NCBI RefSeq assembly: GCF_020745735.1
Contig: NC_083415.1
Span: 31,610,964 to 31,674,963, forward strand
Origin: Hemiscyllium ocellatum
Taxonomy: Eukaryota
Direction of reading: 5' to 3'
Length of the DNA stretch: 64,000 bases
Shown piece after piece: positions 9,251 to 60,277 of the stretch. Every line of letters starts with the position of its first letter. Within the stretch, counting starts at the first letter, position 1. Position numbers and translations under genes: made by a program. The notes below the pieces were generated by a model, which worked only from the letters and a program-made list of their open reading frames with translations, searched no databases and had not been told where the DNA came from.

Positions 9251-9398
9251 TTGTGAAAGGTCACAGCTCCTATGTTGAGTGTAGACATTGCTTAACCTGC
9301 TGGGTATTTTATACACGACATAATATTGTAACATGCATGTGTCATGAAAACAACATTTAAAAAATGTAATTTCAATGTAGGACTAATATAGTCCTCAG

Positions 9399-9547
9399 TT
9401 GAAAATGTGTTGCTGGTTAAAGCACAGCAGGTTAGGCAGCATCCAAGGAATTTCCTGTTCCTTGGATGCTGCCTAACCTGCTGTGCTTTAACCAGCAACA
9501 CATTTTCAACTGTGATCTCCAGCATTTGCAGACCTCATTTTTTACCT
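9399..9547. mobile_element. Palindromic short PLE family A (subfamily 2) insertion; perfect 55-bp inverted repeat
   Basis: Arms 9396-9450 and 9458-9512 are exact reverse complements; 15-bp TSD taatata(g/a)tcctcag at 9384-9398 and 9548-9562. Confidence 0.88.
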
Positions 9548-9555
9548 TAATATAA

Positions 9556-12022
9556 TCCTCAGCAGAGGCCTCACCTTCATTCCCCTATGCTCCCAGATTA
9601 ACGAGTTCAGCACGCGGCGAGACATCGAACAATTCTTTCGCTGCCTTTGTCTCCGCGCCTAATTCTTCAATCAGGACTCTCGCCACCCTCTGATGACCCC
9701 TTTTCCTGCCTCCAACACACCCCATCCACCTGGACACCCTGTGCTGGCTTCTTACCTGCCCCCGATCTCTTTACAGCCAACTGCTGCCATGACATTAACC
9801 GCCTCAACCTCTCCAGCCCTCTCACCCACTCCAACCTCTCACCCTTGGAATGTGCAGCCCTCCACTCCCTCCGTTCCGACCCCAACCTCACTATCAAACC
9901 GGCAGACAAGGGAGGCGCGGTAGTATTTGGCGCATCGATATTTACACCGCTGAGGCTAAACATCAGTTCGCGGACACCTCCTCCTACTGCCCCCTTGACC
10001 ATGACCCCACCTCCCACCATCAAACCATCATCTCCCAGACCATCCATAACCTCATCATCTCAGGGGATCTCCCATCCACCGCCTCCAACCTCATAATCCC
10101 ACAACCCAGCACTGCCCGTTTCTACATCCTGCCCAAAATCCACAAACCTGACTGCCCTGGCTGGCCCATTGTCTCAGCCTGCTCCTGCCCCACCGAACCC
10201 ATCTCTGCATACCTCGACACTGTCGTGTCCCCCTTAGTCCAAGAACTCCCCACCAATGTTCAGGACACCACCCACGCCTTCCACCTTCTCCATGAATTTT
10301 GCTTCCCCGGTCCCCAACGCCTTATCTTCACCATGGACGTCCAGTCCCTGTACACCTCCATCCCCCACCACGAAGGACTCAAAGCCCTCCGCTTCTTCCT
10401 TTCACGCCGTACCAACCAGTACCCTTCCACTGACACCCTCCTTCGACTGACTGAACTGGTCCTCACTCTGAACAACTTCTCTTTCCAATCCTCCCACTTC
10501 CTCCAAACCAAAGGAGTAGCCGTGGGCACCCGCATGGGCCCCAGCTATGCCTGCCTCTTCGTAGAATATGTGGAACATATCTTCCGCAGCTACACTGGCA
10601 CCACCCTCCACCTTTTCCTCCACTACATCAATGACTGTACTGGCGCTGCCTCATGCTCCCACAAGGAGATTGAACAGTTCATCCACTTTACCAACACCTT
10701 CCACCCGACCTCAAATTTACCTGGACCGTCTCAGACTCCTCCCTCCCTTTCCTAGACCTCTCTATTTCTATCTCGGGCGACCAAATCAACACAGACATTT
10801 ACTATAAACCGACCAACTCCCACAACTACCTAGACTACATCTCCTCCCACCCTGTCCCCTGTAAATACGCCATCCCATATTCCCAATTCCTTTGTCTCCG
10901 CCGCATCTGCTCTCAGGAGGACCAGTTCCAATACCGAACAACCCAGATGGCCTCCTTCAAAGACCGCAATTTCCCCCCAGACGTGGTCGACAATGCTCTC
11001 CACCGCATCTCCTCCACTTCCCACTCCTCCGCCCTTGAGCCCCGCCCCTCCAATCGCCACCAGGACAGAACCCCACTGGTCCTCACCTACACCCCACCAA
11101 CCTCCAAATACATCGTATCATCCATCGTCATTTCCGCCACCTCCAAATGGACCCCACCACCAGAGATATATTTCCCTCCCCTCCCCTATCAGCGTTCCGA
11201 AAAAAACACTTCCTCCGCGACTCCCTCGTCAGGTCCACACCCCCCACCAACCCAACTTCCAGTCCCAGCACCTTCCCCTGCAACCACAAGAAATGCAAAA
11301 CTTGTGTCCACACCTCCCCCCTTACTTCCCTCCAAGGCCCGAAGGGATCCTTCCATATCCGCCACAAATTCACCTGCACCTCCACACGCATCATTTAGTG
11401 CATCCACTGCACCTGATGTGGCCTCCTCTATATTGGGGAGACAGGCCGCCTACTTGCGGAACGTTTCAGAGAACACCTCTGGGACACCCGGACCAACCAA
11501 CCCAACCACCCTGTGGCTCAACACTTCAACTCCCCTTCCCACTCCACCAAGGACATGCAGGTCCTTGGACTCCTCCGTCGCCAGACCATAGCAACACGAC
11601 GGCTGGAGGAAGAGCGCCTCATCTTCCCCCTAGGAACCCTCCAACCACAAGGGATGAACTCAGATTTCTCTAGTTTCCTCATTTCCCCTCCCCCCACCTT
11701 GTCTCAGTCCCAACCCTCGAACTCAGCACCACGTTCCTAACCTGCAATCTTCTTCCTGACCTCTTCGCCCCCACCCCCACTCCGGCCTATCACACTCACC
11801 TTGACCTCCTTTCACCTATCGCATTTCCAACGCCCCTCCCCCAAGTCCCTCCTCCCTACCTTTTATCTTAGCCTGCTTGGCACACTTTCCTCATTCCCGA
11901 AGAAGGGCTCATGCCTGAAACGTTGATTCTCCTGCTCCTTGAATGCTGCCTGACCTGCTGCGCTTTTCCAGCAACACATTTTCAGCTCTGATCTCCAGCA
12001 TCTGCAGTCCTCACTTTCTCCT
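9556..12022 (+). mobile_element. 5'-truncated, degraded Penelope-like retroelement, family A (Neptune-like): RT, GIY-YIG endonuclease and 3' pLTR
   Basis: LSRGLTFIP, IKPADKGGAVV, FYILPKIHK, TMDVQSLYTSI, GVAVGTRMGPSYA, YINDC (decayed YIDD); Cys-rich linker CKTC then YIGETGR..RFREH; very C-rich sense strand; hammerhead-like motif at about 11897-11925. Confidence 0.92.
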
Positions 12023-12814
12023 GATATGGATTTGTTTCTACATGTAGGAGAGACCTTAACAGAGAATTGAGGAAAACTCTTACCCCATAGAGCGGTTAGC
12101 ATATGGAAATACTAATCAAAAAAGGTATTTGAGACAAATGCTGTAAACGCATTACAACAAAGGGTAGATGAGTATTTGAGAGGAAAATGATTAGAAAGTT
12201 GTGCTTTTAACGAGCATTGAGGTTGTCCATTAGAATATAAACCTTTATTGGGCTGAATGGCCTGATTGTGTGCTCTATATTTTATGCAATAATAAACCAA
12301 ACAAAATAAATTCTTTACATCTATTGAATTTATCTCCCTCAAGTTGCATGGAATTTCCCTGTTACAAGTTCAAATACATTACAGAGGTGGAAATTTTAAA
12401 AAAGAAATTTCAAAGTACCATGGCACTGACTCTGGAAAATAATGCATTTGAAAGGAGACTAGCTTTAGAAGAACAATCAGCCTACAGCAGCTGTAATACC
12501 ATTAGAACAGCAAGACTGCCAGAGGAACCTTGGAACACATTTCATGGATTTAAACTTCTTTACAACTTCACCTCTATTACCCTTTTAACTTGTGTTCTGG
12601 ATGCTACAGCATGTGCATGTGTATATTTTACTTTTTAAATTAGTTTTATTATACACGCAAGTAAATTTTGTTGATTCAAGAAATCCATCAGGCTGAAATT
12701 TTCATGTAGCTTTTATATACTTTCAATCATATGCTGAATTGAAAAAAAAATTAAAATTCAAACTAATGAAACTTCCAGATTGAGAAGTGAGGAATTTATT
12801 CATCTGTCTGGATT

Positions 12815-13090
12815 CGGTTGTAACAATGTATTCAGAACACTCCAAGTGCTTCATAGCCAATTGCTGATTTTTGAAGATTCAAATTATTTGAAAGGCACAT
12901 ACAACAGACAACTTGTATACACTAAGATCCCAGAGCAGCAAACGAGTGAATTTATGGTGGTTGTGCAAGGCTAGAATGTTTGTCAGGGCAACAGGAGAAC
13001 TTTTGTGTCTTTGAATAGTGACCACCAGAGATCATTGACACCACCTGAGGATACAAGTGTGGTTTAAAATCTCATCTGAGAAAGAAATGG
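12815..13090 (-). mobile_element. Old Deu-domain SINE remnant (SacSINE1/AmnSINE-like)
   Basis: aagatcccagagcagca..ctttgaatagtg..ccacctgag..ggtttaaaatctcatctga resembles the reverse complement of the Deu domain; similar to 49640-49975. Confidence 0.5.
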
Positions 13091-13559
13091 TATTACATTG
13101 ATTTAGATAAGTTTTCAATAATAAAGGAAATAAATAAAAGAGATAATGTGGTTATGATATTAGACTTAAAATCCAGATAAAAAACATGAAAGATCCCACC
13201 TTACAATGACAATTGATCATTTTTAAAAAATTTTGTAAATAGAAAGCTGGCAAAAGTGAAAAGAATTATTTAATTTGCTTATCTATTTAAAGGACAGAAG
13301 TCCTTTATGTTACCCCAGCCGAACATTTATTCTTTGATCAAACAATTTTTGTTCACTTTATAAAAATATATACCCTTGTAAACAGATTAATTAGTCTGTA
13401 TTGCTGCAACATTAATTTCCAAATCATCAGCTTATTTGTTCCTTCCATGAATGCTCCATATTTTTCTTTCTGTTTTTCGTTTGGCTCATGCATCTTTCAA
13501 CTCCTGGCTGTTTGCGGTATCTTGCTACATTGTTGCCTTGAATGCATGCGACTGTATTT

Positions 13560-14620
13560 AGAACATAGAACATAGAACATTACAGCGCAGTACAGGCTCT
13601 TCAGCCCTCGATGTTGCGCCGCCCTGTCTGACTAATCTGAATCCATCCCACCTACACTATTCCATGTACGTCCATTTGCTTGTTCAATGACAACTTAAAT
13701 GCACAAAAACTTGGCAAATCTACTATCGTTGTAGGCAAGGCATTCCATACCCTTACTACTCTCTGAGTAAAGAAACTACCTCTGACATCTGTCTTATACC
13801 TATTTCCCCTCACTTTAAAGTTGTATCCTCTCTTGTTTGCTGTCCCCATACTTGGAAAAAGGCTGTCCCCGTCCACCCTATCTAACCCTCTGATTATCTT
13901 GTATGTCTCTATTAAGTCACCTCTCAACTTTCTTCTCTCTAACGAGAACAGCCTCAAGGCCCTCAGCCTTTCCTCTTAAGACCTTCCCTCCATACCATGC
14001 AATATCCAAGTAAATCTCCTCTGCACCATTTCCAAAGCATCCACATCCTTCTTATAATGCGGTGACCAGAACTATACACAATACTCCAAGTGTGGCCGTG
14101 CCAGAGCTTTGTACAGCTGCAGCATAACCTCCTGGTTCCGGAACTCAATCCCTCTATTAATAAAGGCCAAAACACTGTATGCCTTCTTAACAACCCTGTC
14201 AATCTGGGTGGCAACTTTCAGGGATCTGTGTACATGGACACCAAGATCTCTCTGCTCATCTGCACTCCCAAGAATCTTACCATTAGCCCAGTACTTTGCA
14301 TTCCGATTACTCCGGCCAAAGTGTATCACCTCACACTTGTCCACATTAAACTCCATTTGCCACCTCTCACCCCAGCTCTGCATCCTATCTATGTCTCTCT
14401 GCAACCTACTACATCCTTTGTCACTATCCACAACTCCACCAACCTTAGTGTTGTCCGTAAATTTACTAACCCACCCTTCTAAGCTCTCATCCAGGTCATT
14501 TGTAAAAATGACAAACAGCAGTGGACCCAACACCGACCCATGCGGTACGCCGCTCGTAACTGAACACCAAGATGAACATGTTCCATCAACTACAACCCTC
14601 TGGTTTTTTTTCAGCAAGCC
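13560..14620 (-). mobile_element. CR1 LINE 3' portion with (TTCTATG)n tail
   Basis: ORFs 14072-14617 (GVPHGSVLGPLLF, KFTDNTK) and 13652-13957; gaacatagaacatagaacat tail on the + strand. Confidence 0.9.
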
Positions 14621-14977
14621 AATACTTATGAGCTGAAGATCTTGAATGTTTAAATTATGAATTTCTGTTTTTAGTTGAGTTGGAGTAATGTTACCTTACT
14701 AAAGCTGTGAAGGTTGAACTGTTTCTTTTTTAATGGGAGAATTGAATATTGGATTTGAAGAAAGTAGTCAGTGATTAATATTTAGGGTGTCTTGAAACAG
14801 AAAAGATGCTATTTAAACAAACTTTATTTAATGAAATACGTGGAATTAGAGGGTGACGACAGGACGTGGAATGGAATTAAAACAGAAGATGGGCAGAAAT
14901 TTAGAAAAAAAATACCAAAAATTTTGGATAGAAACTAAAATAAACCACGGAAAGTAGAAGTGCAACATTTTGGAAAT

Positions 14978-15194
14978 TTTTGCAAGGTTTGTAGCTCAGG
15001 TTGAGGTTTAGGGTGTAGGTAAGCTCGCTGAGCTGTAGGTTTCATATCCAGTCGTTTCATTACCTGGTTAGGTAACATCATCAGTGGCGACCTCCAAGTG
15101 AGGCTTGGCGGTCGCCACCGATGATGTTACCTAGCCAGGTAATGAAACGTCTGGATATCAAACCTACAGCTCAGCGAGCAAACCTACACCCTAA
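14978..15194. mobile_element. Palindromic PLE family B pLTR insertion with a hammerhead motif in each arm
   Basis: Arms 15007-15098 and 15104-15195 with about 7 mismatches; 11-bp TSD attttggaaat at 14967-14977 and 15195-15205; homologous to 33080-33190 and 55795-55870. Confidence 0.88.
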
Positions 15195-15287
15195 ATTTTG
15201 GAAATGTAAGAGAGTGGGGTTTATTGTGATGTTTTTCCTGCTCCTAATTGAAAGCTGAACTATTTCTCCAGGTGCATGGCAATGTGA

Positions 15288-15430
15288 CCTTTTGTTATAA
15301 ATTCTGTGTCTCATGGTCCTGCTCCACAACTACCTGATAAAGGAGCATCGCTTTGAAAGCTAGTGTTTCCAGATAAACCTATTGGACTATAACCTGGTGT
15401 TGTGTGATTTTTGAACACTTTTCCCCAGTG
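15288..15430 (+). mobile_element. PLE family C pLTR fragment abutting the ZGPAT 5' region
   Basis: ctacCTGATAAAGGAGCATCGCTTTGAAAGCTAgtg..ctataacctggtgttgtgtgattttt is the reverse complement of about 6425-6570. Confidence 0.8.
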
Positions 15431-15439
15431 TGAGTTCAG

Positions 15440-16101
15440 CCACAGGTCAGAGGTTGCTCGCTGCCTTTTCCTTCCGGAGTTAATGTTCCTGTTGAGGGAT
15501 GGCGGCGGGAGCTGAACAGTTTTGATCGCTGTCAGTGTGGCTCCGTATCGCCGGCCATGGACGAGGCGAGCCTGGAGGCGGCCATCGAGGTGTACAAGGC
15601 CCAGCTGCAGCAGGTGGAGGCGGCGCTGGGATCCGGGGCCCAAGCCGATGCTCAGGCCGACCTGCTCCAGCTCCAGGCCGACCTGCAGCAGTTGGTCGCC
15701 CTGACCGAGTCCAGCCTCCTCTCGGTCCGCAAGAGCCAGCTCCTGGAGCAGCTACAGCGAGGCGCCTCGTCGCCGGAGCCCGAGGCCCAGCCGGGGCTCG
15801 ACGCCGAATACGCCGCTTTCCAGGCGGCCCTGGGCGAGGCCGAGGGGAGCCGGGAGCCGGGGAGCGGCGATGAGGCCGAGGCCGAGGCTGAGGCTGGGGA
15901 GATGAGCGGCGCCAAGGTGCGGGCTCCTTACCGCCCTGCCTGGGGCCCTGTGCAGTATCACAACGCCATGGTGGTGGGTGTGGAGGCTGACCAGCCGCCC
16001 GAGCCCACAGTCCGTGTCCTGTGGATCCACCCGACCCAGAGAGCCATGAAACCCTGCCCCTTCTACCTGAGTGGGAGCTGCCGCTTCCTGGATTCATGCA
16101 G
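15440..16101 (+). promoter_or_regulatory. CpG island covering the ZGPAT 5' end
   Basis: High GC and CpG density; CTTCCGG ETS site at 15471; YY1-like GATGGCGGC at 15498. Confidence 0.75.
15557..16101 (+). CDS. ZGPAT: ZGPAT (zinc finger CCCH-type and G-patch domain protein) coding exon 1
   Basis: MDEASLEAAIEVYKAQLQQVE.., YHNAMVVG, KPCPFYLSGSCRFLDSCR (CCCH finger); gccATGG context; donor AG|GTAACT; 545 bp, phase 2. Confidence 0.96.
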
Positions 16102-16221
16102 GTAACTCAGGAAGGAAAGGCTGAACACATGGACAAACATCATTGGGGGGAGTTCAAAGTTAGGGTCAGTCATAATCACTGGTACAGCCCATGAAAACAT
16201 TCAGGAGCACATTACCAAGAC

Positions 16222-16390
16222 GCTGGAGAAACCCGGCAGATCTGCCAGCATCTATGGAGGAAAAACAGTGACCGTTTTGAATCCAGTGACCCTTCCAAAT
16301 GTTAACTCTGCTCTCTCTCTTCTCAGATGTTGCCAGACCTGCTGAGTTTCTCCAGCAATTTCTGTTTTCATTTCAGACTTTCAACATCTA
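16222..16390. mobile_element. Head-to-head PLE family D pLTR pair (decayed hairpin)
   Basis: gctggagaaacccggcagatctgccagcatct pairs with agatgttgccagacctgctgagtttctccagc. Confidence 0.65.
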
Positions 16391-16958: not shown

Positions 16959-16989
16959 TTTAAACATAGTCTCAGTTTTGTTAAGAGTG

Positions 16990-19970: not shown

Positions 19971-20199
19971 CTTGGTTGTTAAACTTAACACTGAGGTGAA
20001 GTAAGTAGGGTTAGTCACTGCCTGGTTGAAATATTCCAGCTTTGAATATGCAATGAGTACGTATTAGCTGTAACTTCACTATTCTAGAGGATGTATTTAG
20101 GGTGAAAGCTTCTTGTGTATAGAAGTATGTCAGTTATTTTGATGAAAGAAACATCGCTGACTTTTGTCATTGTGCAATACCGTGTCTATAAAATTAATG

Positions 20200-20781
20200 A
20201 TTTGGAGGTGTTGGTGTTGGAATGGGGTGTACAAAGTTTAAATATCATACAAGACCAGGTTTATTTGGAAACCCTATCTTTCGAAGCGCTGCTCCTTCAT
20301 CAGGTGGTTGTGGAGTATAAGGTCGTAGAACACAGAATTGAAAGCAAATGTTTACAGTGTGATGTAGCTGAAATTATATATTGAAAAAGACCTGAATTGT
20401 TTGTTAAGTCTCATCTTTAGAATGGGTGAATTGGTTTCAGTTTTTTCATATGTAAGTTACATTCTAAATTGAACTTTAACAGTAGGTGCCATGTTGGCCC
20501 AGATATTGCATTGAAGGTGTGAGGTTGCTGTGCCCCTCTGTTCAGACTTATTCCAATCTAAAAAAGGGATTTACAGAATCTTAGATGGATTTATTAAGTT
20601 TTTGAGCAAAATACAACATAATTCTGCAAGTACAAATTCATCCCACAAACTTATACATGTGGGTGTATGCATGCAGAGGAGGGTAGGGGATAGTATGAGT
20701 GTATGTGTGTGAGGGTGTGTGTGAGTGCTTCCAGATAAACCTGTTGGACACTGTAGCCTGGAGTTGTGTGGTTTTGAACTG
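20200..20781 (-). mobile_element. PLE family C 3' fragment with an inverted pLTR piece at 20725-20781
   Basis: Homologous to 62140-62700; 13-bp TSD tataaaattaatg at 20187-20199 and 20782-20794. Confidence 0.8.
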
Positions 20782-21262: not shown

Positions 21263-21264
21263 AT

Positions 21265-22235: not shown

Positions 22236-23248
22236 TGCTTCATAATTCAACACAAACATAGAAAGCAATGATACTACATGCCTGCATTTTCTAATAAAAG
22301 GTAGTAAGAATCTGAAAATAAACCTCAAAAATCAGAGTAATGCTCAAGAGTAAAACTTGAAATGAGGGAAATTGGCCTGCTTCTGATCCTGTGATGCGTT
22401 TATATGAACAATGTATTAGCATACAAGTCAGCAGCGAGAGAAAGTCACTTGAACACAATCTTCTAGATATCCTATCAAGATGAAAGATAAAACTGAAACC
22501 ATACATTTGAGTTATCAGTAATATTACCTCAGTGTTTGTGGCTGTGTCAGCTGCTGCTTCCTACCCTTTCCTAAAAACGTGCTTATCTTTGCCCTAGGCT
22601 TTTATTGCTCCAGCTTCACCCCCTCACCCCATTCATAATCAAGTAATTTCTGCTGTACTTGTTTCTTCATCCAACTATCTTGACCCAGCACTAATTAACT
22701 TATTAAAGTTCCTTTACAAAGGCAACATTTTCCTTACCTTCAAAACTGTCATCATTAGCTGCTTCCTCAAAGAATGTTACAAATGCTATTACCTACAAAA
22801 TCATCACTTCTCTTTTCTTTAAATAATTTCAATATATTGTCAACAAAATTCCTTATTCACCTTTTCCATGACTGTTTAAATTACTTTCCCCTTATAGTAC
22901 ATTACTGAGATTTTTCTGGATATCCTTTGCAAATTGCAGCTTTGTCTTGGTATTGCTCCATAACTTATTCTGAGTATTTGACACGATCAACCATTCCAAA
23001 CACTACTTCCATGAGCTCCATCTTTGTTCAAGTGTCCATGCATAGTTTCACTTTCCTCCAGTGTGGACTGGGCATCTTTAATATTGGCTTTTCCTATTAT
23101 CTCCAGAATGCCACACAATTCACTTTTTCGGTCTTTTAATTAATGTTTGTGTTTAGCAACATTCAGTTTCTTTGGCATTAATGATACTGTATGATGGCCT
23201 CACCACTATCTCATTTGATTTCATGATCATCTCATTACTGGGTTAAGT

Positions 23249-23445
23249 GTCAAAAAGTGTGGTGCTGGAAAAGAGAGTTGATAGAGTATAAACTCTTCAT
23301 CAGTAAAGCCAATATTCTGAAGAAGAGCTTATGCTCAAAACATTGATTCTCCTGCTCCGTGGATGCTGCCTGACCGGCTGTGCTTTTCCAGCACCACACT
23401 TTTTGACTCTAATCTCCAGCATCTGCAGTCTTCTCATTCTCCTCA
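23249..23445. mobile_element. PLE family A pLTR with inverted 5' segment
   Basis: Perfect 25-bp inverted repeat at 23249-23273 and 23383-23407; CTGAAGAAGAGCTTATGCTC motif on + and CTGATGAAGAG on -. Confidence 0.75.
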
Positions 23446-23538
23446 TTATCAGGCTTACTTGGTATAATTATGTTAGAGCATTGGGGTACAGAATGTGTCC
23501 TGCTATTCCTCTATCTATTATCTCTAATAGAGATAAAA

Positions 23539-26520: not shown

Positions 26521-26580
26521 TTGCCTCAGCCCTACTCTCCCTAAGTCCAAATTTTTGTTCATCCTTCTGCTTGCCAGCTC

Positions 26581-27361
26581 ATAGTCATAGAGATGTACAG
26601 CATGGAAACAAACCCTTCGGTCCAACCCGTCCATGCCGACCAGATATCCTAACCCAATCTAGTCCCACCTGCCAGCACCCCGGCCAATATCCCTCCAAAC
26701 CCTTCCTATTCATATACCCATCTAAATGCCTCTTAAATGTTGCAATTCTACCAGCCTCCACCGCTTCCTCTGACAGCTCATTCCATACATATGCCACCCT
26801 TCTGTGTGAAACAGTTGCCCCTTAGGTCTCTTTTATATCTTTCCCCTCTCACCCTAAACCTATGCCCTCTAGCTCTAGACTCCCCGACCCCAGGGAAAAG
26901 ACTTTGTCTATTTACCCTATCCATGCCCCTCATAATTTTGTAAATCTCTATAAGGTCACCCCTCAGTCTCCGAAGCTCCAGGGAAAACCATCCCAACCTA
27001 TTCAGCCTCTCTAGAGATCAAATCCTCCAACCCTGGCAACATCCTTGTAAATCTTTTCTGAACCCTTTCAAGTTTCACAATATCTTTCTGATAGGAAAGA
27101 GACCAGAATTGCACGCAATATTCCAACAGTGGCCTAACCAATGTCCTGTACAGCCGCAACATAACCTCCCAACTCTTGTACTCAATACTCTGACCCATAA
27201 AAGAAAGCATACCAAACGCCACCTTCACTATCCTATCTACCTGTGACTCCACTTTCAAGGAGCTATGAAGCTGCACTCCAAGGTCTCTTTGTTCAGCAAT
27301 ACTCCCTAGGACCTTACCATTAAGTGTATAAGTCCTGCTAAGATTTGCTTTCCCAAAATGC
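26581..27361 (-). mobile_element. Young CR1 LINE 3' 0.8 kb
   Basis: ORFs 26998-27276, 26778-26996 and 26585-26797; nearly identical to 60797-61571. Confidence 0.92.
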
Positions 27362-27850
27362 TATTTCTCTTCTACAAATATATGGGGACATAACTTACAA
27401 ACATCTCATTTACTTTGTCTAAGTTAGTAGCAATCCTGGCTGTTGTATATAACATTAATATATATAGATTTTCATTTCAAGGCTTTGTTATACTTTATCC
27501 TATACTGCTAAAGTTTTGAGGAGAAAAGCATTTGACTTACTGAAAATTAGGCCTTTCCTTCGTACATGTTTATCAGTTATAAACTTTTTCATATCTTAAT
27601 GTGTGTTGCAGTAGCACTTACTTCTGATTAGCTTCAATACTAACTTTCAATCACAAGATTTCCAAAGTAATTGCTTACTTTTGCAAGCTGAGGAAGTTGT
27701 TACTGCAAGATGCAGTCTTTAATCTTTACATGTGCCTGAGAAGCTCTGAAATTTGTGATAATGAGTATCCGAGCTGCTGGTCGTGTAAAATTTCAGCCCT
27801 GATTGATCTCAGTTATAAAGCAAACTTTGTTTTTATAACTTAATGTCAGG

Positions 27851-35269: not shown

Positions 35270-35635
35270 TGTATGTAGGTGAATTAGCAATTCTTGCCTA
35301 TCCCTAATTACTCTTCAAAACCTGGTGATGACCCATTTTTGAAGCACTGGAATCCATATGACGTAGCTTTTCACAGTGCAGTTGGGAAGTAAGATCCAGG
35401 ATATTGACACAGTGGTAGTGAAGGAACAGTGATATTGTTCCAAGTCAGCCTAGTGTATGCCCATGAGGAAAACTTACAGGTGATGGTCTCTCTGCATATA
35501 TTGCTGTTGTCCTTCTAGGCCATAGAGATTTCAGGTTTGGAAGCGGCTTTTGAAGGAGCCTTGATGGGTTGCTGCATAGCAGCTTGTAGGTAGTACACAT
35601 TGCTGCCTCTGTGTTACTGATGGACACCGTGCATG
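35270..35635 (-). mobile_element. Old LINE 3' fragment (clade unassigned); same family as 51530-52200
   Basis: Shared gtccttctagg..ggtttggaag..gttgctgca..cttgtag..cacactgctgcc blocks. Confidence 0.55.
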
Positions 35636-35669
35636 TTTGAACTGATTTGGAGGGCATGCTCTCTTTTAG

Positions 35670-36093
35670 GTTTGGGGAAGAATGCTGATGGTCGAGTGGA
35701 GCCTGTACAAGCAGTGGTTTTACCTCCGGGAAAATCCCTGGATCAATGTGCTGAAATCCTGCAAAAAAAGCGGGAAGGAAAACTGAACCATCTGCACAAA
35801 AAGAAGCACAAGCGGAAAAGCGAAGGAGGCTCCCATGTTGTTAAAGAAAGAAAACCTTGTCAGACTGTATTTGACTTTTTGAATGACAAACTTCAAAGTA
35901 CTGGACAGACTAGCAGTTCACCAATTCCGACTGGATTCCCCATGAGAGAAAAAAGTAGCAAAGAACGTTATAGGGGTACTAAAAGCACAAAGAAAGCTCT
36001 AAATATCCATCTTTTTCAAATAACAGAGAAGATTGAACATACAGAAAAAGACATTGCAAAAATTATGGAGGCACTTGCAAGAAATGTTGGAAG
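35670..36093 (+). CDS. ZGPAT: ZGPAT coding exon 5 (424 bp)
   Basis: (G)LGKNADGRVEPVQAVVLPPGKSLDQCAE..VFDFLNDKL..EALARNVG(R); cttttag acceptor and AG|GTATCT donor. Confidence 0.95.
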
Positions 36094-36439
36094 GTATCTT
36101 ATGTACTGCTTTGTTTACAGTTTTGGGCTTAATTCAGTTCATGGGCCTGATTTTGATTAGTTGCAGTATTGTGTATAATAGTAGATGGTTACCCATAAAT
36201 CCCATTTGAAGTACACCTACACCTCCACTCCACCTTCCATTTCCATTCCATAATCATCTGCTCACTGTGTGACGTAGGGAGTAAGTTTCATACATGCTAC
36301 TTCGAGAGTAACACAAGAATGGTTCATCATTGTAAGAACTCTCATAACTTTTCTCCATTAAAAATGCAAGCTAGTCCCTAAGAAGGGATAGTGAGAATTA
36401 CCCCCTTGATGTTTTGTTCTTGGCTGAACTTCAAATTCT

Positions 36440-38120
36440 AAATTAGTATTTTGCATCAGTATTTACTGTGGAAAAGGATATGGAAGATATAGAATGTAAG
36501 GAAATAGATGGTAAAACCTTGAAAAATATCCATATTACAAAGGAGGAAGTGCTGGATGTCTTGAAATGCAAAAGGTGGATAACTCCCTCAGGACCTGATC
36601 AGGTGTACCCAAGAACTCTGTGGAAAACTAGAGATATTTGTATCATCAATAGTCACAGGAGGTTTGCTAACGTGGTACCACTGTTTAAGAAGATTGGTAA
36701 GGACAGGCCAGGGAACTACGGACCAGTGAGCCTGACGTCGATGGTGGGTAAGTTGTTGGAGGGAATCCCGAGGGACAGGATGTACATGTATTTGGAAAGG
36801 CAAGGACTGATTAGGGATAGTCAACATGGCTTTGTGTGTGGGAAATCATGTCTCTCAAACTTGATTGAGCTTTTTGAAGAAGTAACAAAGAGGATTGATG
36901 AGGGCAGAGCAATAGATGTGATCTATATGGACTTCAGTAAGGCATTCGACAAGGTTCCCCATGGGATATAGGGAGGACTAGCCATTTGGATATAGATTAG
37001 ACCTCATGGGATATAGGGAGGACTAGCCATTTGGATATAGAACTGGCTCAAAGGTAGAAGACAGAGGGTGGTGGTGGAGGGTTGTTTTTCAGACTGGAGG
37101 CTTGTGACCAGTGGAGTGCCACAAGGATCGATGCTGGCTCCTCTACTTTTTATCATTTATATAAATGATTTGGATGCGAGCATAAGAGGTGTAGTTAGTA
37201 AGTTTGCAGATGACACCAAAATTGGAGGTGTGGTGGACAGTGAAAAGGATTACCTCAGATTACTACAGGATCTTGATCAGATGGGCCAATGGGCTGAGAA
37301 GTGGTAGATGGAGTTTAATTCAGATAAATGGGAGGTGCTGCATTTTGGGAAAGCAAATCTTAGCAGGACAAATGTACTTAATGGTGAGGTCTTAGGGAGT
37401 GTTGCTGAACAAAGAGATCCTGGAGTGTAGGTTCATAGCTTCTTGAAAGTGGAGTCACAGGTAGATAGGATAGTGAAGAAGGCGTTTGGTATGCTTTCAT
37501 TTATTGGTCAGAGTATTGAGTGCAGGAATTGGGAGGTCATGTTGCGGCTGTACAGGTCATTGGTTAGGCCACTGTTGGAATATTGCGTGCAATTCTGGTC
37601 TCCTTCCTATCGGAAAGATGTTGTGAAACTTGAAAGGGTTCAGAAAAGATTTATAAGAATGTTGCCAGGGATGGAGGATTTGAGCTATAGGGAGAGGCTG
37701 AACTGGCTGGGGCTGTTTTCTCTGGAGTGTCGGAGGCTGATGGGTGACCTTATAGAGTTTTACAAAATTGAGGAGCATGAATAGGGAAAATAGACAAAGT
37801 CTTTTCCTTGGGGTGGGGAAGTCCAGAAATGGAGGGCATAGGTTTAGGGTGAGAGGGGGAAGATATAAAAGAGACATAAGCGGCAACTTTTTCACACAGA
37901 GGGTGATACGTGTATGGAATGAGCAGCCAGAGGAGATGGTGGAGGCTGGTACAATTGCAACATTAAAAAGGCATTTGGATGGGTATATGAATAGGAAGGG
38001 TTTGGAGGGATATGGGCCGGGTGCTTTTAGGTGGGACTAGATTGGATTGGGATATCTGTTCGGCATGGACGGGTTGGACCGAAGGGTCTGTTTCCATGCT
38101 GTACATCTGTATGACTTTGA
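36440..38120 (+). mobile_element. CR1 LINE 3' 1.7 kb (RT domain, frameshifted)
   Basis: SQHGF..YMDFSKAFDKV, GVPQGSMLAPLLF..KFADDTK, LEYCVQFWSP; atgactttgactct tail. Confidence 0.92.
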
Positions 38121-38968
38121 CTCTATTTGGCTGCAATCTTCTGCTCTAATCATCTGTTGCTTGCCCATCCCCACCTGTGCCTCACTTAGATGGCCATTCA
38201 GATGTTTTGCCACAACTTTGTTCAGTCCTGGGGTCAGCATTTTTGAAACCTTCAATTCTACTTTTCAGCCTGTTAACATGTCATTCCCATCCACATTAAT
38301 CTGTGATAGCTTTCTATTCCTCAGAGTACTGATTCTCCAATCCTCCTATTCTCACTGCCGTATTTCTGTATACTACTCATAGTCGTTCACACCTATTCAC
38401 TGCCTGTTCTCCTAAATTTGGATTTACTGCAAGTCTCCTTCACCACCCTGACTTTTATAGCAGTTAACATCATCACCTTGCCATCTACAGATCCCTTCGA
38501 AACTCATCCTCCTTGCTGTGTGACTTCAAGATCTGCCTCATTTACATGCCTTTGAGCTAAATGTTTGAACTGTCTTTGGAACCTTGCCCACAAACCCAGC
38601 TTCTCATTGGTGCACAATCCCTATCTACAGGGAATCTCCACTTCTCTACCAAAGAGAGCAAGTAAATGCAAGTTGCATCTTCTTGTATGTTGGTAATCTC
38701 TCGGTACACATCGAAAACTGAATCATATTGTTGGGCTTTGCAGATAGTCTCAACAAAGACTTTCTAAAATTACTGCAGATAATTTAATCCTATGTCAGAG
38801 TTTGATTCATTGTGTAGAATCCTTATTTGTCCATTGGTGTACAAGTAAAGTTACACTGAGCAAGGATCAAGATTCACCTCCATTATTAAGGAATTTCAGT
38901 GGGTATTGTCTCCACAACATCACTTGGTAATCCGGTTCAATTTTCTTTACTTTTTTTTTAAATCACAG

Positions 38969-52200: not shown

Positions 52201-52204
52201 TTCG

Positions 52205-53770: not shown

Positions 53771-53809
53771 AATTAGTACTTGTGCAGTACTAACGTCAGT
53801 TGTCACTTC

Positions 53810-54782
53810 AGTGATGAAGCTGCTCCTTTAACAAGCTTATCACGTCCTTGGCTTTTTTTTTTGAAGGGTTTTAGGGCTGATATGATAATCGGGATGGGAC
53901 CATTCGCTACAGCAGGTTCGCCGCCGTCGATTAGCCACTGCCCTTTCACTGCCGAGGATGCTCAGCCACCGCCCATTGGCCACTGAAGACGATACACTAC
54001 CGCAAGTATTTGTAACTCATTTTTATATATAAACCAATAAAATGATATTTATTTTACCTTTTTTTAATCAATTTGTAGTATGTAGTTATATAAATAAAGG
54101 GGACTGAGAAGTATGAAAGAACAGGCGGGAGGGAAAACAATCAGTACATATATATGTTTTCCAATGGCGAATAATCTGCAGAGGTCAAACGACCCCCATG
54201 GAGAAACATTGGTGGCGAACCAGCAGTGGCTAATCGGCAGCAGCGAATGTGCCGTGGTGAATCGTCACCAACCCTTGATAATAGATAGCAGATACTGCCT
54301 CAAACAGAGGCTTTCAAGTTGAAAAGAAAATGTACAATGAAAGGGGTGTGACCAGTTCTCCCAGCTCAGCTTATCTGTATATTTTTTAACATTAATGTGG
54401 AAAAGCCGCTGGACCCATAGAAGCAGTTCCAGGCTCATACTCTCTCTCTCTCTCTGACCTCTGACTTCTATCCTGTAAGAACCTGTGTTTGATTTTGTGC
54501 CAGGGGGTGTTAATGGGGATTGTTGCAAATATTTGGAACAGCATCATTAAATTGGGATGATCTGATGGGTTTTGACAGAGGTTAAGTTATTCGGTATTCT
54601 GTTTTCTGTTGTTTGTGTTTCATTCGGTAATCTTGTAAATAAATTGTTTTGTTTAAACCAAGTGGTTTGACCAGCTGATTCTCTCCTGAAATATCCACTT
54701 ACACCTGCTTAAAACAACTAGCAAAGTTAGTGTCTAGGCTCCCTTCTTGAAATGTTTTGAGGGGTCTGGCCTGGTCCAATAA
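53810..54782 (+). mobile_element. Probable solo LTR (related to 34593-35232) containing a nested MITE
   Basis: Start gtgatgaagctgctcctttaacaag and end ccttcttgaaatgttttgaggggtctggcctggtcca match the other copy; AATAAA near 54638. Confidence 0.6.
53891..54274. mobile_element. MITE with about 50-bp TIRs and probable 9-bp TSD (Mutator/MULE-like)
   Basis: gggatgggaccattcg..gattagccactgc versus gcagtggctaatc..aatcgtcaccaaccc; flanks atgataatc and ttgataata; AT-rich core. Confidence 0.65.
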
Positions 54783-54864
54783 ACTTATCCATTTAATGTT
54801 GTATAGATCTTACAGCATCTAAACATTAGATGTTTCCTTATGGTTTGATGCTAAACATTGTGCA

Positions 54865-55875
54865 ATTATCAGAGGAAACCTACAACACCATCGACAATAT
54901 CCCGACAGGGATAAAAATCACAAAAGAGGAGGTGAATGACAACAGACTCCCATTCCTGGACATGACAGTTAACGGAGAGCTTCAAATGGGACAGTATAGT
55001 TAATGGAGAGCTTCAAATCAATGTCTACAGAAAAAGAACAAACACTTAAATTCAGAAGCAATCATCCCAACACCCACAAACGGAGCTGCATCAAGATGTT
55101 ATTTCAACGACTACATCACACTGCAGCACCCAAGGACCACAAACAGCAGAAGAAAAATATCAATGCAATGTTTTCAAGAAAAACAGGTACCCAATAAACA
55201 CAATCCATCGATTCCTCAGAAACAACCCCAAACAAGCAGACACAATGCAACCAAAAACTGTAGCCACATTACCTTACATCAAAGACATATGAGAAATTAC
55301 TTCCAGACTACTCAAACCCCTTGGCATCATGGTAGCCCATAAATCTACCAACACACTTAAATAGTGACAACTGAACCTAAAGGATTCATAAGATAGAATC
55401 AGCAAAACTAATGTCATTTACAAAATACTATGCAAAAACTGTAAAAAGTACTACATCGGACAAACAAGCAGGAAACTTGCCACCAGGATACATGAACACC
55501 CATTAGCCACCAGAAGACATGACCCACTATCACTAGTTTCCATACATACTGACAAAGAAGGACACCACTTTGACTGGGACAACACACACATCCTAGGACA
55601 GGTGAAACAAAGACATGCACGAGAATTCTTAGCGGCATGGCATTCTAACCAGATCTCTATCAATAAACACATTGATTTAGATCCTATCTACCTTCCTTGA
55701 AAAAAAAGAACTGGAAATGACATCACCCACTTTAAGAAATGAAGACTTATAAATAGAGAGACAGGACATACCACCAGCGCTTCACTGGAGACTCTCACTG
55801 ATGATGTTAGCTAGTCATAGAGATGAAACATCTGAAAACAAACCTCCCAACTCAGTTAGCTAACTTACATACTTA
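54865..55875 (+). mobile_element. PLE family B (Poseidon/Penelope-like) 3' part: RT thumb, GIY-YIG and pLTR
   Basis: EEVNDNRLPFLD; NVIYKILCKNCKKYYIGQTSRKLATRIHEH at about 55410-55499; CTGATGATGTTAG..GAAACATC at about 55798. Confidence 0.88.
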
Positions 55876-56104
55876 TCAGAGAATATTGCCACCACTGCCC
55901 TAATAGGGTACAGTCATGGCTGAACGAAATTAAGGTGGTTTGGCCTAAGGTACCTTTGAAACTGACTACTAATTTAATACAACATATTGTAGCTGACAAG
56001 AGGTGATTGTTTATACTCTGAGTATATACCACAAATGATGGAATGGGGGGGGGGGGCCGTGAGGGTGGTGAATTGAGAAACAGTTATGGTATGATTTATA
56101 AAAT

Positions 56105-56750
56105 AGAAATAAGGAAAATAGAAGCAGGAGGAGGCCATTCAACCTCTTCAGCTTTTTCCACCATTCAGTCTGATCATGGCTGATCATTGAGCACAAAACC
56201 TGAATCCCACCCTCCTCTCCTTCTCCCTTGATTTCTTGAGGCAAAAGAGCTATATGTTTTGGCCTCAACCGCTTTCTTTGGTAGTGAATTCCACAGGGTC
56301 ACTGTGCCTGGGTGAAGAAATTTCTCCTCAGTCCTAAAAGCATTACCTTTTCCTTTAACTCCTGTTTCTGGAATTTCCCGCAATCAGGGACATCCTTCCT
56401 GTATCTAACCTGTTTAATCCTGTTAGAATTTGAAAAGTTTCTATAAGGTAACCCTCATTCTTCTAAATTCTAGTGAATACAATTAAAATGGACTCAACTC
56501 TCCTCATACATCACTCCTGGCATCTGTGGAATCAACCTTCACCACAATCTCTCTGTAGCAAGAACATTCTTCCTCAGATAAGGAGACTAAAACTGCACAC
56601 AATATTCCAGATGTAGCCTCACCAATGCCCTGTGTCATTGCAGCAAGTCATCTTTGTTCCTGTATTGGAACCTTGTCGCTGTGAAGGCCAACATACAGTT
56701 TAACCCCTTTACTGCTTGCTGCACTTGTAATTTCAGAGAATGGTGCATGA
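56105..56750 (-). mobile_element. CR1 LINE 3' fragment
   Basis: Same family as 18770-19970. Confidence 0.75.
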
Positions 56751-57259
56751 GGATAAAGAAAGAAAGCCAAACCTTCTCGATAACCTTTTCTATGGACAAC
56801 AGAGGCCAGTGCAAAACTATGGGTCACTTTTGTTCTCATCAAGTGTTATTCTAATTTCATTACCTGTAAACCTCAGGTAGGCAAGCAACAAGTAATCATT
56901 TTTTTATCATAGTCAAAAATATTTGGAAAATGCTTAATTCACTTTTTAAAAAGTCTTAAAGGCATCTGATGCTATGAGTGAATATAGCAGATAAGCTTAA
57001 TCTTTAGTGGTTAACAGAATCCGTCACAGTTGATGTGGGAAGTGAAATATCAAACATTTTATCTTCAAAACATTCATCCACTGGCTGGTTGATATAAATT
57101 GCATAATGTCTTTGCTGTGTAAACAGTAACAATTCATTTTCATTTTTTAAGTAAGATACAGCAAATAAAAAGTCTCCAGCTAATACTGGAGTATTTTCTA
57201 GTTAGTGAACAATTAGCAACAGCAATCAACTCACACACTGTTCAACAGTATTAAAGGTC

Positions 57260-57392
57260 ATTCCTGATGGAAGAGGTTATGCCTGAAACATTGATTCTCC
57301 TGCTCCTCAGATTCTGCCTCACCTGCTGTGCTTTTCCAGCACCACACTTTTTGACTTTGATCTCCAGTATCTGCAGTACTCACTTTCTCCTA
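57260..57392 (+). mobile_element. Short PLE family A pLTR
   Basis: attcCTGATGGAAGAGGTTATGCCTGAAAC..ctcactttctcc. Confidence 0.75.
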
Positions 57393-57454
57393 GTATGACA
57401 AGACACGGTATAATTAACGAGCTCTGCTCAAATGTGGTGGCAAGTGTGCTGCAA

Positions 57455-58235
57455 CAAAAGTTGAACTGAGAAATGTGAGGTGCCACATTTTGGAAAAATA
57501 AATCAGAGCAGGACTTATACACTTAATGGTAAGGTCCTGGGGAGTGTTGCTGAACAAACAGACCTTGGAGTGCAGGCTCATAGTTCCTTGAAAGTAGAGT
57601 CGCAGGCAGATGGGACTCTATGAATCTAATTGAAATATTAAGAAAAAAGGTCTATTTACACTGAGATGGCTTCTTTAGAAACAAAATCAGAAATTGCTGG
57701 GAAAAATACTCAGTGGGTCTGGCAATATCAATGGTGAAAAATCCAAGTTAATGGTTCAGGTCCGGTGACCGTTTTTCATAGAGTCATAGAGATGTACAAC
57801 ACAGAAACAGACCCTTCCGTCCAACTCGTCCATGCCAACCATTTATCCTAACCTAATCTAGTCCCATTTTCCAGACTTGGCCTATATCTATCTGAATCCT
57901 TTCTATTCAAATTCCCATTCAGATGCCTTTTAAATGCTGTAATTGTACCAGACTCCACCATTTCCTCTGGCACCTCATTCCACACACATACCGCCATCTG
58001 CATGAAAAAGTTGCCTCTTAGGTCCCTTTTACACCTTTCCCCTTTCATCCCAAACTCTAGTTCTGGACTCTCCCATCCCAGCGAAAAGACTGTCTATTTA
58101 TCCCATCCATGCCCCTCATGATTTTATAAACCTCTATGAGGTCACTCCAGGGAAAACAGCCTAGCCTATTCAGCCTCTCCCTATAGCTGGTATTATTTCT
58201 GATTTCCTGTATCTGCAATTCTTTGGGAGTTTGTT
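57455..58235. mobile_element. Cluster: CR1 fragment (+, 57455-57612) and PLE family D pieces (57678-57778 on -, about 58190-58235 on +) separated by a CR1 3' end (-, 57778-58188)
   Basis: Similarity to other copies in the window. Confidence 0.65.
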
Positions 58236-58516
58236 TTTGGCCCATTTATAAAATTTGTGCTGGTCTTGTTGGAAATGGATGCTGAAACCTCTGCCATTCT
58301 TTTCCGTAGCTATTTTCTCCTTTAAAGGAAAAGTTATATGAGAAAGAGGAAGTCCCCGTTCAGTTGTTAATACTTCAAACGTGCACAGAAAATAATGCAT
58401 AGGCTTTTTAAAAGAGTTTATGTAGCTCGGTTAAACAGGATCAGTAACGTACGTGATAAAATACCTTTTGGTATATTTCTGAACATTTGGTCGTATGCGA
58501 TGAAGTGCTTTAATAC

Positions 58517-59545
58517 TTAAAGGTTATTAAGTAAGTTCTTTTCGGGTTGAGCTAGCTGGGCGGCAGGTGTTGAGGACAACGAACGCGCAGCTTTCCCGAG
58601 CTTTTCCACTCGTAACTTCATATCGTCTCCAGCCAGAACATAAACAAGTGGGTTGAAGATGCTGTTCAAACTGGCGAGGGCTCTGGCCACTTGGTAACCC
58701 AGATAAATGTTTTTGAAGGTTTGGATGCACTGGCCCTGGAGTTGGAAGTGCCTGGAGATCAGGTTCGCGTTTCTCAGGACGTGATAAGGAGCGAAGCAAA
58801 GGGAGAACAAGGCGGTGACGATCAGCACCAGTTTCAGGCAGCGCTCCCGCAAGCCTTGCTCCACGTTCTTGTTGCGGATCAGAACCAGAACAACGCGGCT
58901 GTAACAGCCAACGATGATGAGGAAAGGGAGGACGAAAGCCATCACGGTCAAGGCGAGATTGTACTTCGTGTACTCCCCCAGCTCCTTTATCGCGGCACTG
59001 TCCTGGCATTTGGTGCCATTGAGGTTGGTCTTGGTGAAATGGAGATCGGCCGAGGTTTGGGCTAGAACCAGCCCCCAGACCAGGAGGCTGAGGAGCAGCG
59101 AGCGGCGGCGGTTCCACCTGCCCAGCACCTTCATGGGGTGCACGATGCCCAGGTATCGCTGCACACTGATACAAGTGAGGAAGCCGATGCTGCCGTACAG
59201 GTTCAGGTGGAAGAGGAGCCTGGTCATTTTGCAAAACGCTTTCCCGAACGTCCAGCGGTGCCCGTTGGCATAGTACACCACCAGGAAGGGCAAAGTGATG
59301 ACATACAGGAGGTCAGCCAGGCCCAGGTTAAACAAGAACACGGTGATGCTGGTGAATTTCCTCCGGCTCAAGCACATGGCGCCCAGCACCCAGCAATTCC
59401 CCAGGAAGCCCAGTATAAACACGATGGTGTAGACGGTGGGCAGGAACTTCGATGTGAAGCCTTTATTAACTTTACAGTAGGTGCTGTTGCCTGGTCCGAG
59501 GGATGTGAATGATACAGAGGGAAGGGTAATGCTGGGCTCTGCCAT
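58517..59545 (-). CDS. Intronless P2Y purinoceptor 1-like GPCR (342 aa)
   Basis: Seven TM segments; FLPTVY, GFLGN, NLGLADLLY, LFHLNLYGSIGFLTCISVQRY, PYHVLRN, YQVARALASLNS..NPLVY; agcATGG start with an in-frame TGA just upstream. Confidence 0.93.
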   Translation of the reverse strand: MAEPSITLPSVSFTSLGPGNSTYCKVNKGFTSKFLPTVYTIVFILGFLGNCWVLGAMCLSRRKFTSITVFLFNLGLADLLYVITLPFLVVYYANGHRWTFGKAFCKMTRLLFHLNLYGSIGFLTCISVQRYLGIVHPMKVLGRWNRRRSLLLSLLVWGLVLAQTSADLHFTKTNLNGTKCQDSAAIKELGEYTKYNLALTVMAFVLPFLIIVGCYSRVVLVLIRNKNVEQGLRERCLKLVLIVTALFSLCFAPYHVLRNANLISRHFQLQGQCIQTFKNIYLGYQVARALASLNSIFNPLVYVLAGDDMKLRVEKLGKAARSLSSTPAAQLAQPEKNLLNNL

Positions 59546-60044
59546 GCTTCAGTCAACTCACAAATTCCCACTCTTAAACTGCATCCAGTGGCAGATCCGA
59601 TGTTACCCTTTCGCAGCAGGACAAATGAAGCCAGGCTGCCCGATGTGAACGGCGAGCGCTCTCTAATTCCCGCGCCAGCGATGCTGCCCAGTGACTGGGT
59701 GAATCCCACAATGTGTTGAATGCAGACCGGCGGGTGTTCAGCTCCGCTAAGGAGTGACACGCCACGCACTGCGTCTCTGTACATGAGGGAGAGTAAACAC
59801 AGACCCAAAAACCTGCCCATGTTCTCTCTGCCACACACACACAAAAAAACACCCTCTGCGCCTCCTGTTGTCTGTCTCTTCAACTCACCACCATATCCCC
59901 AGGACAATATTTAACTGAGGTATCGAGTTCAATAATTTTAGGGCTTGAGCACATTCTTCTAAGACCTTTACCCACATCCACCCCCAGGTTTTGTCATCAC
60001 ATGGGCAACTTTCACAACAGCCTACTCATTTCCACCCAGTGATT

Positions 60045-60277
60045 GATGTGGAGGTACCAGTGCTGGACTGGGGTGGACAAAGTAAAAAAAAATCACACAA
60101 CACCAGGTTATGGTCCAACAGGTTTAATTGGAAGCACTAGCTTTCAGAGCACTGCTCCTTCATTAGATGTTTGTGCACAACCACTTAATGAAGGAGCAGC
60201 GCTCTGAAAGCTAGTGCTTCCAAAGAAACCTGTTGGACTATAACCTGGTGTTGTGTGATCTTTAGCTTTATCCACCC
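60045..60277. mobile_element. Palindromic PLE family C pLTR insertion (about 100-bp arms)
   Basis: Arms at about 60071-60175 and 60176-60277, centred on ttgtgcacaa; degenerate duplication tccaccca(g/a)tg at 60031 and 60271. Confidence 0.85.

Follow-up and report, generated by a model that had tools for sequence, protein, structure and literature searches.

A 64,000-nt stretch of contig NC_083415.1 of the epaulette shark, Hemiscyllium ocellatum (hereafter the window), contains the genes ARFRP1 and ZGPAT and a P2Y1-like receptor gene, and a short DNA hairpin (A, B and C, respectively) stands upstream of each of the three (Table 1). Here we report that each hairpin is a single retro-insertion of a Penelope-like element (PLE), that the hairpins are the products of three different PLE families, and that the three insertions are independent events of different age. 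We favour the reading that they are ordinary PLE fold-back insertion scars and that their position next to promoters is most likely a neutral outcome, and put the probability of this reading at roughly 0.7.

Table 1. Genes, promoters and PLE-derived features of the window (positions count from the first nucleotide of the window).
Feature	Position	Strand	Description
Hairpin A, arms	9396-9450 / 9458-9512		55 nt, 100% identity, 7-nt spacer
Hairpin A, left target-site duplication	9384-9398		15 bp, last 3 bases overlap the arm
Hairpin A, short arm	9396-9450	-	antisense family-A terminus, no tail
Hairpin A, long arm and tail	9458-9547	+	arm 9458-9512, 35-nt tail 9513-9547
Hairpin A, right target-site duplication	9548-9562		14/15 bases match 9384-9398
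Hairpin B, arms	15007-15098 / 15104-15195		92 nt, 92% identity, 5-nt spacer
Hairpin B, left target-site duplication	14968-14977		TTTTGGAAAT, identical to 15196-15205
Hairpin B, long arm and tail	14978-15098	-	arm 15007-15098, 29-nt tail 14978-15006
Hairpin B, short arm	15104-15195	+	CCGAUGA lesion, GUC triplet intact
Hairpin B, right target-site duplication	15196-15205		10 bp
Hairpin C, arms	60088-60175 / 60176-60263		88 nt, 91% identity, no spacer
Hairpin C, left target-site duplication	60031-60044		14-15 bp
Hairpin C, long arm and tail	60045-60175	-	~26-nt tail 60045-60070; CUAAUGA lesion
Hairpin C, short arm	60176-60270	+	UUAAUGA lesions
Hairpin C, right target-site duplication	60271-60285		first 7 bases mimic the next element bases
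Decayed 5'-truncated family-A PLE	9563-12020	+	reverse transcriptase, GIY-YIG, minimal hammerhead, terminus
Family-B PLE remnant	55392-55869	+	GIY-YIG reading frame 55392-55697, then terminus 55782-55869
Giant head-to-head family-C PLE pair	62134-64000+		apex 63378, 5'-truncated, right arm cut by window end
Solo family-C PLE copy	15269-15450	+	same orientation as ZGPAT
ARFRP1, first coding (ATG) exon	~5676-5810	-	begins directly after splice acceptor at ~5774
Putative ARFRP1 promoter and non-coding exon 1	9040-9260	-	small CpG island, splice donors near 8985-8993
ZGPAT, exon 1	15557-16105	+	ATG 15557, CCCH zinc finger, within CpG island 15401-16000
ZGPAT, G-patch exon	35633-36160
P2Y1-like receptor gene	58517-59545	-	single exon, 342 aa, 7tm_1

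Self-BLAST of the whole window listed eight palindromes, and hairpins A, B and C were recovered exactly where the original prediction had seen three inverted repeats; for hairpin C, BLAST returned a palindrome at 60071-60277 with arms of 88-105 nt and about 90% identity. The three had been called the best-preserved short hairpins of the window, and so they are, with 87-94% identity across the palindrome against 59-76% over the whole palindrome for the other short ones (415-464, 16222-16356, 23238-23419 and 53877-54291). Predicted distances of about 150, 360 and 530 bp to the genes also hold, each hairpin being upstream with a gap, measured from its near edge, of 157 bp to the upstream limit of the promoter motifs in the CpG island 9040-9260 (A), 362 bp to the ZGPAT ATG at 15557 (B) and 500-526 bp to the receptor ATG at 59545 on the minus strand (C). 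The earlier list of hairpins in the window was correct for A, B and C, but it overlooked two further PLE hairpins (62134-64000+ and 20199-20775), and while hairpin B does lie upstream of ZGPAT, the PLE copy closest to the start of that gene is the solo family-C copy 15269-15450.

Each hairpin is recognised as one insertion because it combines a target-site duplication with a one-sided tail and with 5'-truncated ends that meet at the apex. All three insertions show a duplication of 10-15 bp and a tail of 26-35 nt on a single arm. The extents first given for the elements, which covered the arms, are right for the arms; the full elements are larger, since they also have a one-sided tail and a target-site duplication, and without the duplication span about 9399-9547 (A), 14978-15195 (B) and 60045-60270 (C). 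The BLAST palindrome of hairpin C reaches 60277 because the first 7 bases of the right duplication continue the element sequence. The tail of hairpin A (35 nt) extends to the true 3' end of family A, which is also the endpoint of the solo copies 481-645 and 11875-12020; those of B (29 nt) and C (~26 nt) are slightly below the published 30-40 bp. The arms are joined head to head, as had been claimed, in all three cases as 5'-to-5' pairs of PLE termini, with the 5' ends placed at the apex, and the 3' ends facing outward, by the orientation of the hammerhead motifs.

The assignment to three families was borne out as well: the arms of A, B and C have no mutual BLAST similarity and differ in their helix II sequences, and all three terminal families occur just downstream of PLE GIY-YIG reading frames within the window. 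The family-A element 9563-12020 contains an RVT_1 domain (9850-10755) with the typical reverse transcriptase motifs of PLEs, a GIY-YIG motif (11429-11476) and the terminus (11875-12020). In family B, the GIY-YIG reading frame scores 24.3 bits in Pfam (cut-off 22.6), and the terminus follows about 280 bp downstream of the frame. Family C is represented by the giant pair 62134-64000+, situated 2.6 kb upstream of the receptor gene, whose arms of at least 1.24 kb are 81-87% identical and both encode a readable zinc-finger and GIY-YIG end of a PLE protein; a family-C terminus (62134-62257, minus strand) forms the end of the left arm, and the apex at 63378 falls inside the endonuclease coding region. 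Its reading frame matches eukaryotic GIY-YIG/HTH_animal/RVT_1 clusters of a protein atlas with a score of 0.96-0.97; Pfam gave no match for it, and BLASTP yielded no significant alignment between the endonuclease frames of families C and B because the two families are too diverged. The old intronic hairpins 16222 and 24840 belong to a fourth family, D, which is related to A.

Minimal hammerhead cores are present in families A, B and C, consisting of CUGANGA, one bulged base, a helix II of 4-7 bp and GAAA; in families B and C, helix III is replaced by a palindromic ACGU or AGCU. A pattern search that allowed the one published bulged base before helix II found 7 intact cores in the window against 0.1 in shuffled sequences; by sequence, these are putative ribozymes. 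Both arms of hairpins B and C have lesioned cores: in C the lesions lie in the CUGAUGA box, and in B they differ between the arms, the long arm having retained an intact CUGAUGA box together with a cleavage triplet changed to GAC. Rfam searches of the whole window found nothing at gathering thresholds, and permissive searches returned no hammerhead, only sub-threshold noise from microRNA and small nucleolar RNA families; such silence of the Rfam hammerhead models is expected, since minimal PLE hammerheads are without helix III. Minimal hammerheads of this kind are known from the pseudo-long terminal repeats of PLEs, among them pairs of motifs placed on opposite strands at a distance of 100-700 bp (PMC4209133). 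Those described by Cervera and de la Pena (2014; PMC4209133) share with the shark copies the CUGANGA box, the unpaired base, the helix II of 4-7 bp and the GAAA, whereas the putative cores of shark hairpins B and C are lesioned in both arms and escape the Rfam hammerhead models.

The receptor protein maps to assembly GCA_020745735.1, and the locus was compared with its orthologue in the whale shark, Rhincodon typus (L001), a whale-shark paralogue (L002) and the orthologue in the sevengill shark, Heptranchias perlo (L003). The whale-shark orthologue aligns on both sides of hairpin C, is without exactly the bases 60045-60270, and has a single CTATCAGTTGGTGGA where the window has both copies of the duplication flanking the element. 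Given this clean empty site, hairpin C was inserted after the two lineages split, and it is lineage-specific. The family-D solo copy 60460-60560 is common to the epaulette and the whale shark, so family D was active before the split. The arms differ by 7.6% in hairpin B (7/92) and by 9.1% in hairpin C (8/88), without compensating changes; with orthologous non-coding DNA of epaulette and whale shark differing by about 18-28%, the two hairpins are roughly a third as old as the split. Hairpin A, with its identical arms, appears to be much younger than B and C, unless conversion from arm to arm has homogenised it.

No hairpin was found within 1 kb upstream of the receptor ATG at any of the three comparator loci, nor within 10 kb upstream of the receptor in the sevengill shark. 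The expectation that a hairpin would be kept at the orthologous promoter is contradicted for hairpin C, which is absent in Rhincodon typus, with none within 10 kb upstream in Heptranchias perlo. For ZGPAT, a search with the exon-1 peptide gave only matches of 55% identity or less, none recognisable as coming from a close shark relative. The giant pair 62134-64000+ had no orthologous alignment in whale-shark locus L001. The whale shark has PLE hairpins of its own at this locus, one at L001 8440-8654 (1.4 kb upstream of the receptor) and one at L001 11522-11856 (just downstream of the receptor coding region). The aligned blocks that flank the former abut in the window, so this hairpin appears to be absent in the epaulette shark, which indicates that hairpin insertion occurred in both lineages. 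The 21-kb sevengill locus has almost no hairpins; it contains, at L003 20327-20447, a family-C-like terminus that is 74% identical to the window copies, and since Heptranchias perlo is a hexanchiform shark, the family-C terminus is old or widespread in sharks.

The PLE enzyme of Anolis cleaves and extends both target strands in vitro, prefers AT-rich DNA, and has two internal start sites of reverse transcription whose spacing corresponds to the length of the tail (PMC11167929). From this work we infer two-strand priming and two start sites also for the shark hairpins. A complex of the PLE reverse transcriptase and GIY-YIG endonuclease would cut both target strands with a stagger of 10-15 bp, which would give rise to the target-site duplication, and both DNA ends would serve as primers for reverse transcription close to the RNA's 3' end, at either of two start sites about 25-35 nt apart. 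With one outer (tailed) and one inner start site, a tail would be expected on one arm only. Both cDNAs would stop early, near the hammerhead module, and would be joined 5' end to 5' end, yielding a tailed hairpin of 150-230 bp. The mimicry of the element by 7 bases of the duplication in hairpin C fits such a primed initiation. Microhomology was also seen at the short-arm junction of hairpin A, where 3 bases (9396-9398) read as element in the same way as the 7 bases 60271-60277 of hairpin C, and would be in keeping with pairing between the target end and the template RNA at the inner start site.

Published PLE insertions comprise an inverted, 5'-truncated copy, a tail of 30-40 bp at one end, and complex inverted structures (PMC8557442). 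The shark hairpins resemble them (Evgen'ev and Arkhipova 2005; Craig et al. 2021, PMC8557442; Frangieh et al. 2024, PMC11167929) in the head-to-head copies, the heavy 5' truncation and the one-sided tail, as well as in the target-site duplications, the moderately AT-rich targets, the terminal-repeat hammerhead, and parent elements with GIY-YIG endonuclease and reverse transcriptase; they differ in that both copies are truncated to ~55-130 nt, so that the whole insertion is a hairpin of 150-230 bp with no coding part. A literature search found no description of the shark-specific families A-C. Non-LTR retrozymes, that is, short hammerhead-bearing pieces of PLE terminal repeats present in high copy number, are similar in these respects, but they form tandem head-to-tail units thought to be mobile via circular RNA, whereas the shark hairpins are single inverted pairs (bioRxiv 10.64898/2026.07.22.740005). 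In Xenopus, retrozymes and non-autonomous PLE derivatives are reported to be enriched in intergenic DNA (bioRxiv 10.64898/2026.07.22.740005). The shark hairpins fit target-primed insertion because of their duplications and tails. L1 elements arrive at a comparable product by twin priming, in which each of the two target strands is primed and the retro-copy ends up inverted and 5'-truncated within a target-site duplication; but L1 joins different parts of the element and rarely forms a symmetric hairpin, whereas PLEs combine a GIY-YIG nuclease with internal starts of reverse transcription.

Other origins of the hairpins, and reasons for their retention or good preservation, have to be weighed against insertion by PLEs followed by neutral persistence. 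That they are no PLE products at all, but miniature inverted-repeat transposable elements (MITEs) or assembly artefacts, might be suggested by short palindromes with flanking duplications and by the perfect identity of the arms of hairpin A. Both identities were rejected and are extremely improbable: the duplications vary in length between 10 and 15 bp, one arm is longer by the tail, the same sequences exist as single-orientation copies with duplications of their own (481-645) and form the 3' ends of elements with reverse transcriptase and endonuclease, the arms of B and C have diverged, and the empty site in the whale shark fits a real insertion of hairpin C. Almost as improbable is that selection has kept the hairpins as cruciforms, as boundaries, or as sources of double-stranded or small RNA on upstream antisense transcripts. 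The predicted RNA folds are very stable (-108, -164 and -145 kcal/mol), the hairpins are placed where divergent promoter transcripts would cross them, and hairpin B has sub-threshold matches to microRNA precursors in Rfam, as any long hairpin gives. A function proposed for the hairpins is nevertheless contradicted for C by the whale-shark empty site, the receptor gene being conserved in the whale shark without hairpin C and in the sevengill shark without any hairpin in the 10 kb upstream; the arms of B and C are 8-9% diverged with uncompensated mismatches and hammerhead lesions, the three hairpins differ in family, age and orientation, and PLE hairpins just as good, or larger, exist well away from promoters (20199-20775 and 62134-64000+). 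If upstream antisense transcription crosses the hairpins, RNA duplexes of 55-100 bp would form as a by-product, not as a selected function. The idea that the hairpins look better preserved only through escape from CpG decay, next to unmethylated CpG islands, had in its favour that CpG-rich stretches are found 150-500 bp from all three. The number of CpGs in the arms speaks against this idea (none in A, 0 and 1 in C, 3 and 5 in B), with only 2/7 mismatches of B in a CpG context and with CpG-depleted DNA immediately around the hairpins, and it can be dismissed as safely as the MITE or artefact origin. The difference in preservation probably reflects age, the decayed hairpins 16222 and 24840 belonging to family D, which was active before the whale-shark split.

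A bias of insertion is harder to separate from neutral placement. A catalogue of families A-D, made by BLAST and palindrome scan of the window, comprises about 21 PLE events that cover 7.9 kb or 12% of the bases, about 1 per 3 kb: 8 hairpins (9397, 14978, 16222, 20199-20775, 23238, 24840, 60045 and 62134-64000+) and 13 solo or long copies. Hairpins A, B and C occupy CpG-poor DNA (GC 0.34-0.43, CpG observed/expected 0-0.26) immediately outside the CpG islands, and at a density of one PLE piece per 3 kb many cases of a PLE abutting a promoter are to be expected in this genome. Several results weigh against the favoured reading. Under a uniform null with 8 hairpins, the probability of a hairpin in the first 500 bp upstream of every one of the three genes is 1.4e-4, and within 1 kb it is 1.1e-3; with the three young hairpins only, the latter value becomes 3e-5. 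PLE events of any form number 5 within 500 bp upstream against 0.49 expected (Poisson 1.6e-4) and 6 within 1 kb against 0.98 expected (Poisson 5e-4), a 6-10-fold excess that involves four families and several ages, as a bias of insertion or of tolerance predicts. Moreover, two-strand priming in hairpins A, B and C rests on work with the Anolis PLE, not with shark PLEs, and gene conversion between the arms could make hairpin A look too young. One could accordingly propose that PLE integration, in whatever form, is biased towards the CpG-poor shoulder that lies 0.1-1 kb upstream of active promoters with a CpG island, possibly because of open or negatively supercoiled chromatin or because insertions are better tolerated there. 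Four families and different ages are represented among the six events, the family-D solo predating the whale-shark split and hairpin C postdating it, and by coordinate sum PLE sequence makes up about half of the 1 kb upstream, against 12% window-wide. We nonetheless regard such a bias as unlikely. The nominal P values of 1e-4 to 1e-3 for proximity to promoters relative to random positions stand as computed, but they are post hoc and concern n = 3 genes: thresholds, anchors and window were picked after the pattern had been seen, and since the window was chosen from about 1,500 of this genome, about one such coincidence is expected. ARFRP1 and ZGPAT, two of the three genes, share one spacer, and if their head-to-head order is ancestral, any insertion between them lies upstream of a promoter. 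The events also cluster (hairpin A beside the older family-A PLE), so that the independence assumed by the Poisson test is violated; taken together, the three comparator genes have 1 PLE event within 1 kb upstream; and PLE density is about equal in introns and intergenic DNA (~0.37 and 0.34 per kb by coordinate tally). Hairpins had been predicted to lie closer to promoters than solo PLE copies, and no difference between the two was found (Fisher p = 0.26-0.41). A link to promoters is thus not established: it cannot be told from chance here, and it is not specific to hairpins.

Literature searches found no promoter preference reported for PLEs, and the published biases are towards AT-rich DNA, microsatellites and intergenic regions (including PMC8557442 and PMC11167929). 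The stronger proposal that PLE ribonucleoproteins preferentially integrate at promoter shoulders, as hairpins and solo copies alike, so that promoter flanks would gain inverted repeats and hammerheads and, from antisense transcripts, double-stranded RNA, seems to us more doubtful still than a simple bias. Transposons that target promoters include P elements, Tf1, murine leukaemia virus (MLV) and MITEs of plants. These would resemble the shark PLEs if insertions did pile up upstream of start sites, but PLEs have no established promoter preference, and what the window offers is three genes chosen post hoc. If true, an enrichment in the flanks of promoters would mean that a poorly understood class of retroelements prefers certain targets and steadily supplies promoters with inverted repeats, and it would stand as the first case of promoter-proximal targeting described in PLEs.

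On the favoured reading, the striking hairpins by three shark promoters are normal PLE insertion scars, and the result is mostly housekeeping. It provides three fully resolved examples, with duplication, tail and polarity, one of them (C) with an empty site in another species, and ties three shark terminal families to endonuclease-coding parents. Such resolved examples aid the annotation of PLEs, which are badly handled by standard pipelines, and the insertion structures agree with the cleavage and extension of both target strands by PLE enzymes seen in vitro.

Shark relatives of the 342-aa receptor carry the names P2Y purinoceptor 1 or 1-like. In ARFRP1, the ATG exon directly follows a splice acceptor, and a non-coding first exon must therefore lie upstream. 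The best candidate for it is the island 9040-9260, a putative ARFRP1 promoter judged from its motifs (GC box at 9187, NRF1-like at 9218, ZNF143-like at 9158) and from its CpG observed/expected ratio of 0.76 (0.30 window-wide). ARFRP1 and ZGPAT, which we take to be head-to-head neighbours also in human, are separated here by a spacer of 6.2 kb, of which about two-thirds is transposon-derived by coordinate sum. The decayed family-A PLE 9563-12020 occupies much of this spacer. The plus strand of the stretch 10001-12000 is C-rich, with a GC skew of -0.5, and a large part of 9601-11900 is high in CpG (observed/expected 0.6-0.9), so that by composition alone the element could pass for a promoter island. 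On the ZGPAT side, the solo family-C copy stops 107 bp before the ATG and ~20 bp before an ETS motif (15471) at the edge of the CpG island. Terminal repeats of PLEs show promoter activity in Drosophila, and by analogy it is conceivable that this copy might contribute to the ZGPAT promoter.

As a microRNA precursor, hairpin B was rejected, its best match being mir-2765 with 42.8 bits against a cut-off of 58, and all others lower. The sub-threshold matches at 15056-15146 are to the invertebrate families mir-2765 (E 7e-8), mir-5918 and mir-4856. They are most likely the generic matches of a long hairpin, and they raise the question whether some of those microRNA families are themselves PLE hairpins.

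Among the remaining repeats of the window, the family-C hairpin 20199-20775 is asymmetric, a 530-nt minus-strand copy being joined at its 5' end to an inverted terminus piece of 52 nt. The ~450-bp stretch upstream of its hammerhead recurs at 6595-7036 and 62300-62769, and because it is found at three places, family-C copies can be said to extend past the hammerhead; they often do so and contain a (TG)n/(GA)n-rich stretch. The palindrome 53877-54291, with CpG-rich outer arms (~59% identity) and a very AT-rich centre, does not look like a PLE derivative; it may be what is left of a DNA transposon, either of the fold-back kind or with terminal inverted repeats. An abundant repeat of ~0.8 kb is present at 60782-61574, 26573-27379 and 37340-38133, in copies that are 89-90% identical; the copy 60782-61574 interrupts DNA that is contiguous in the whale shark and looks like an insertion specific to the epaulette lineage, and a related copy is found at L001 6594-7328.

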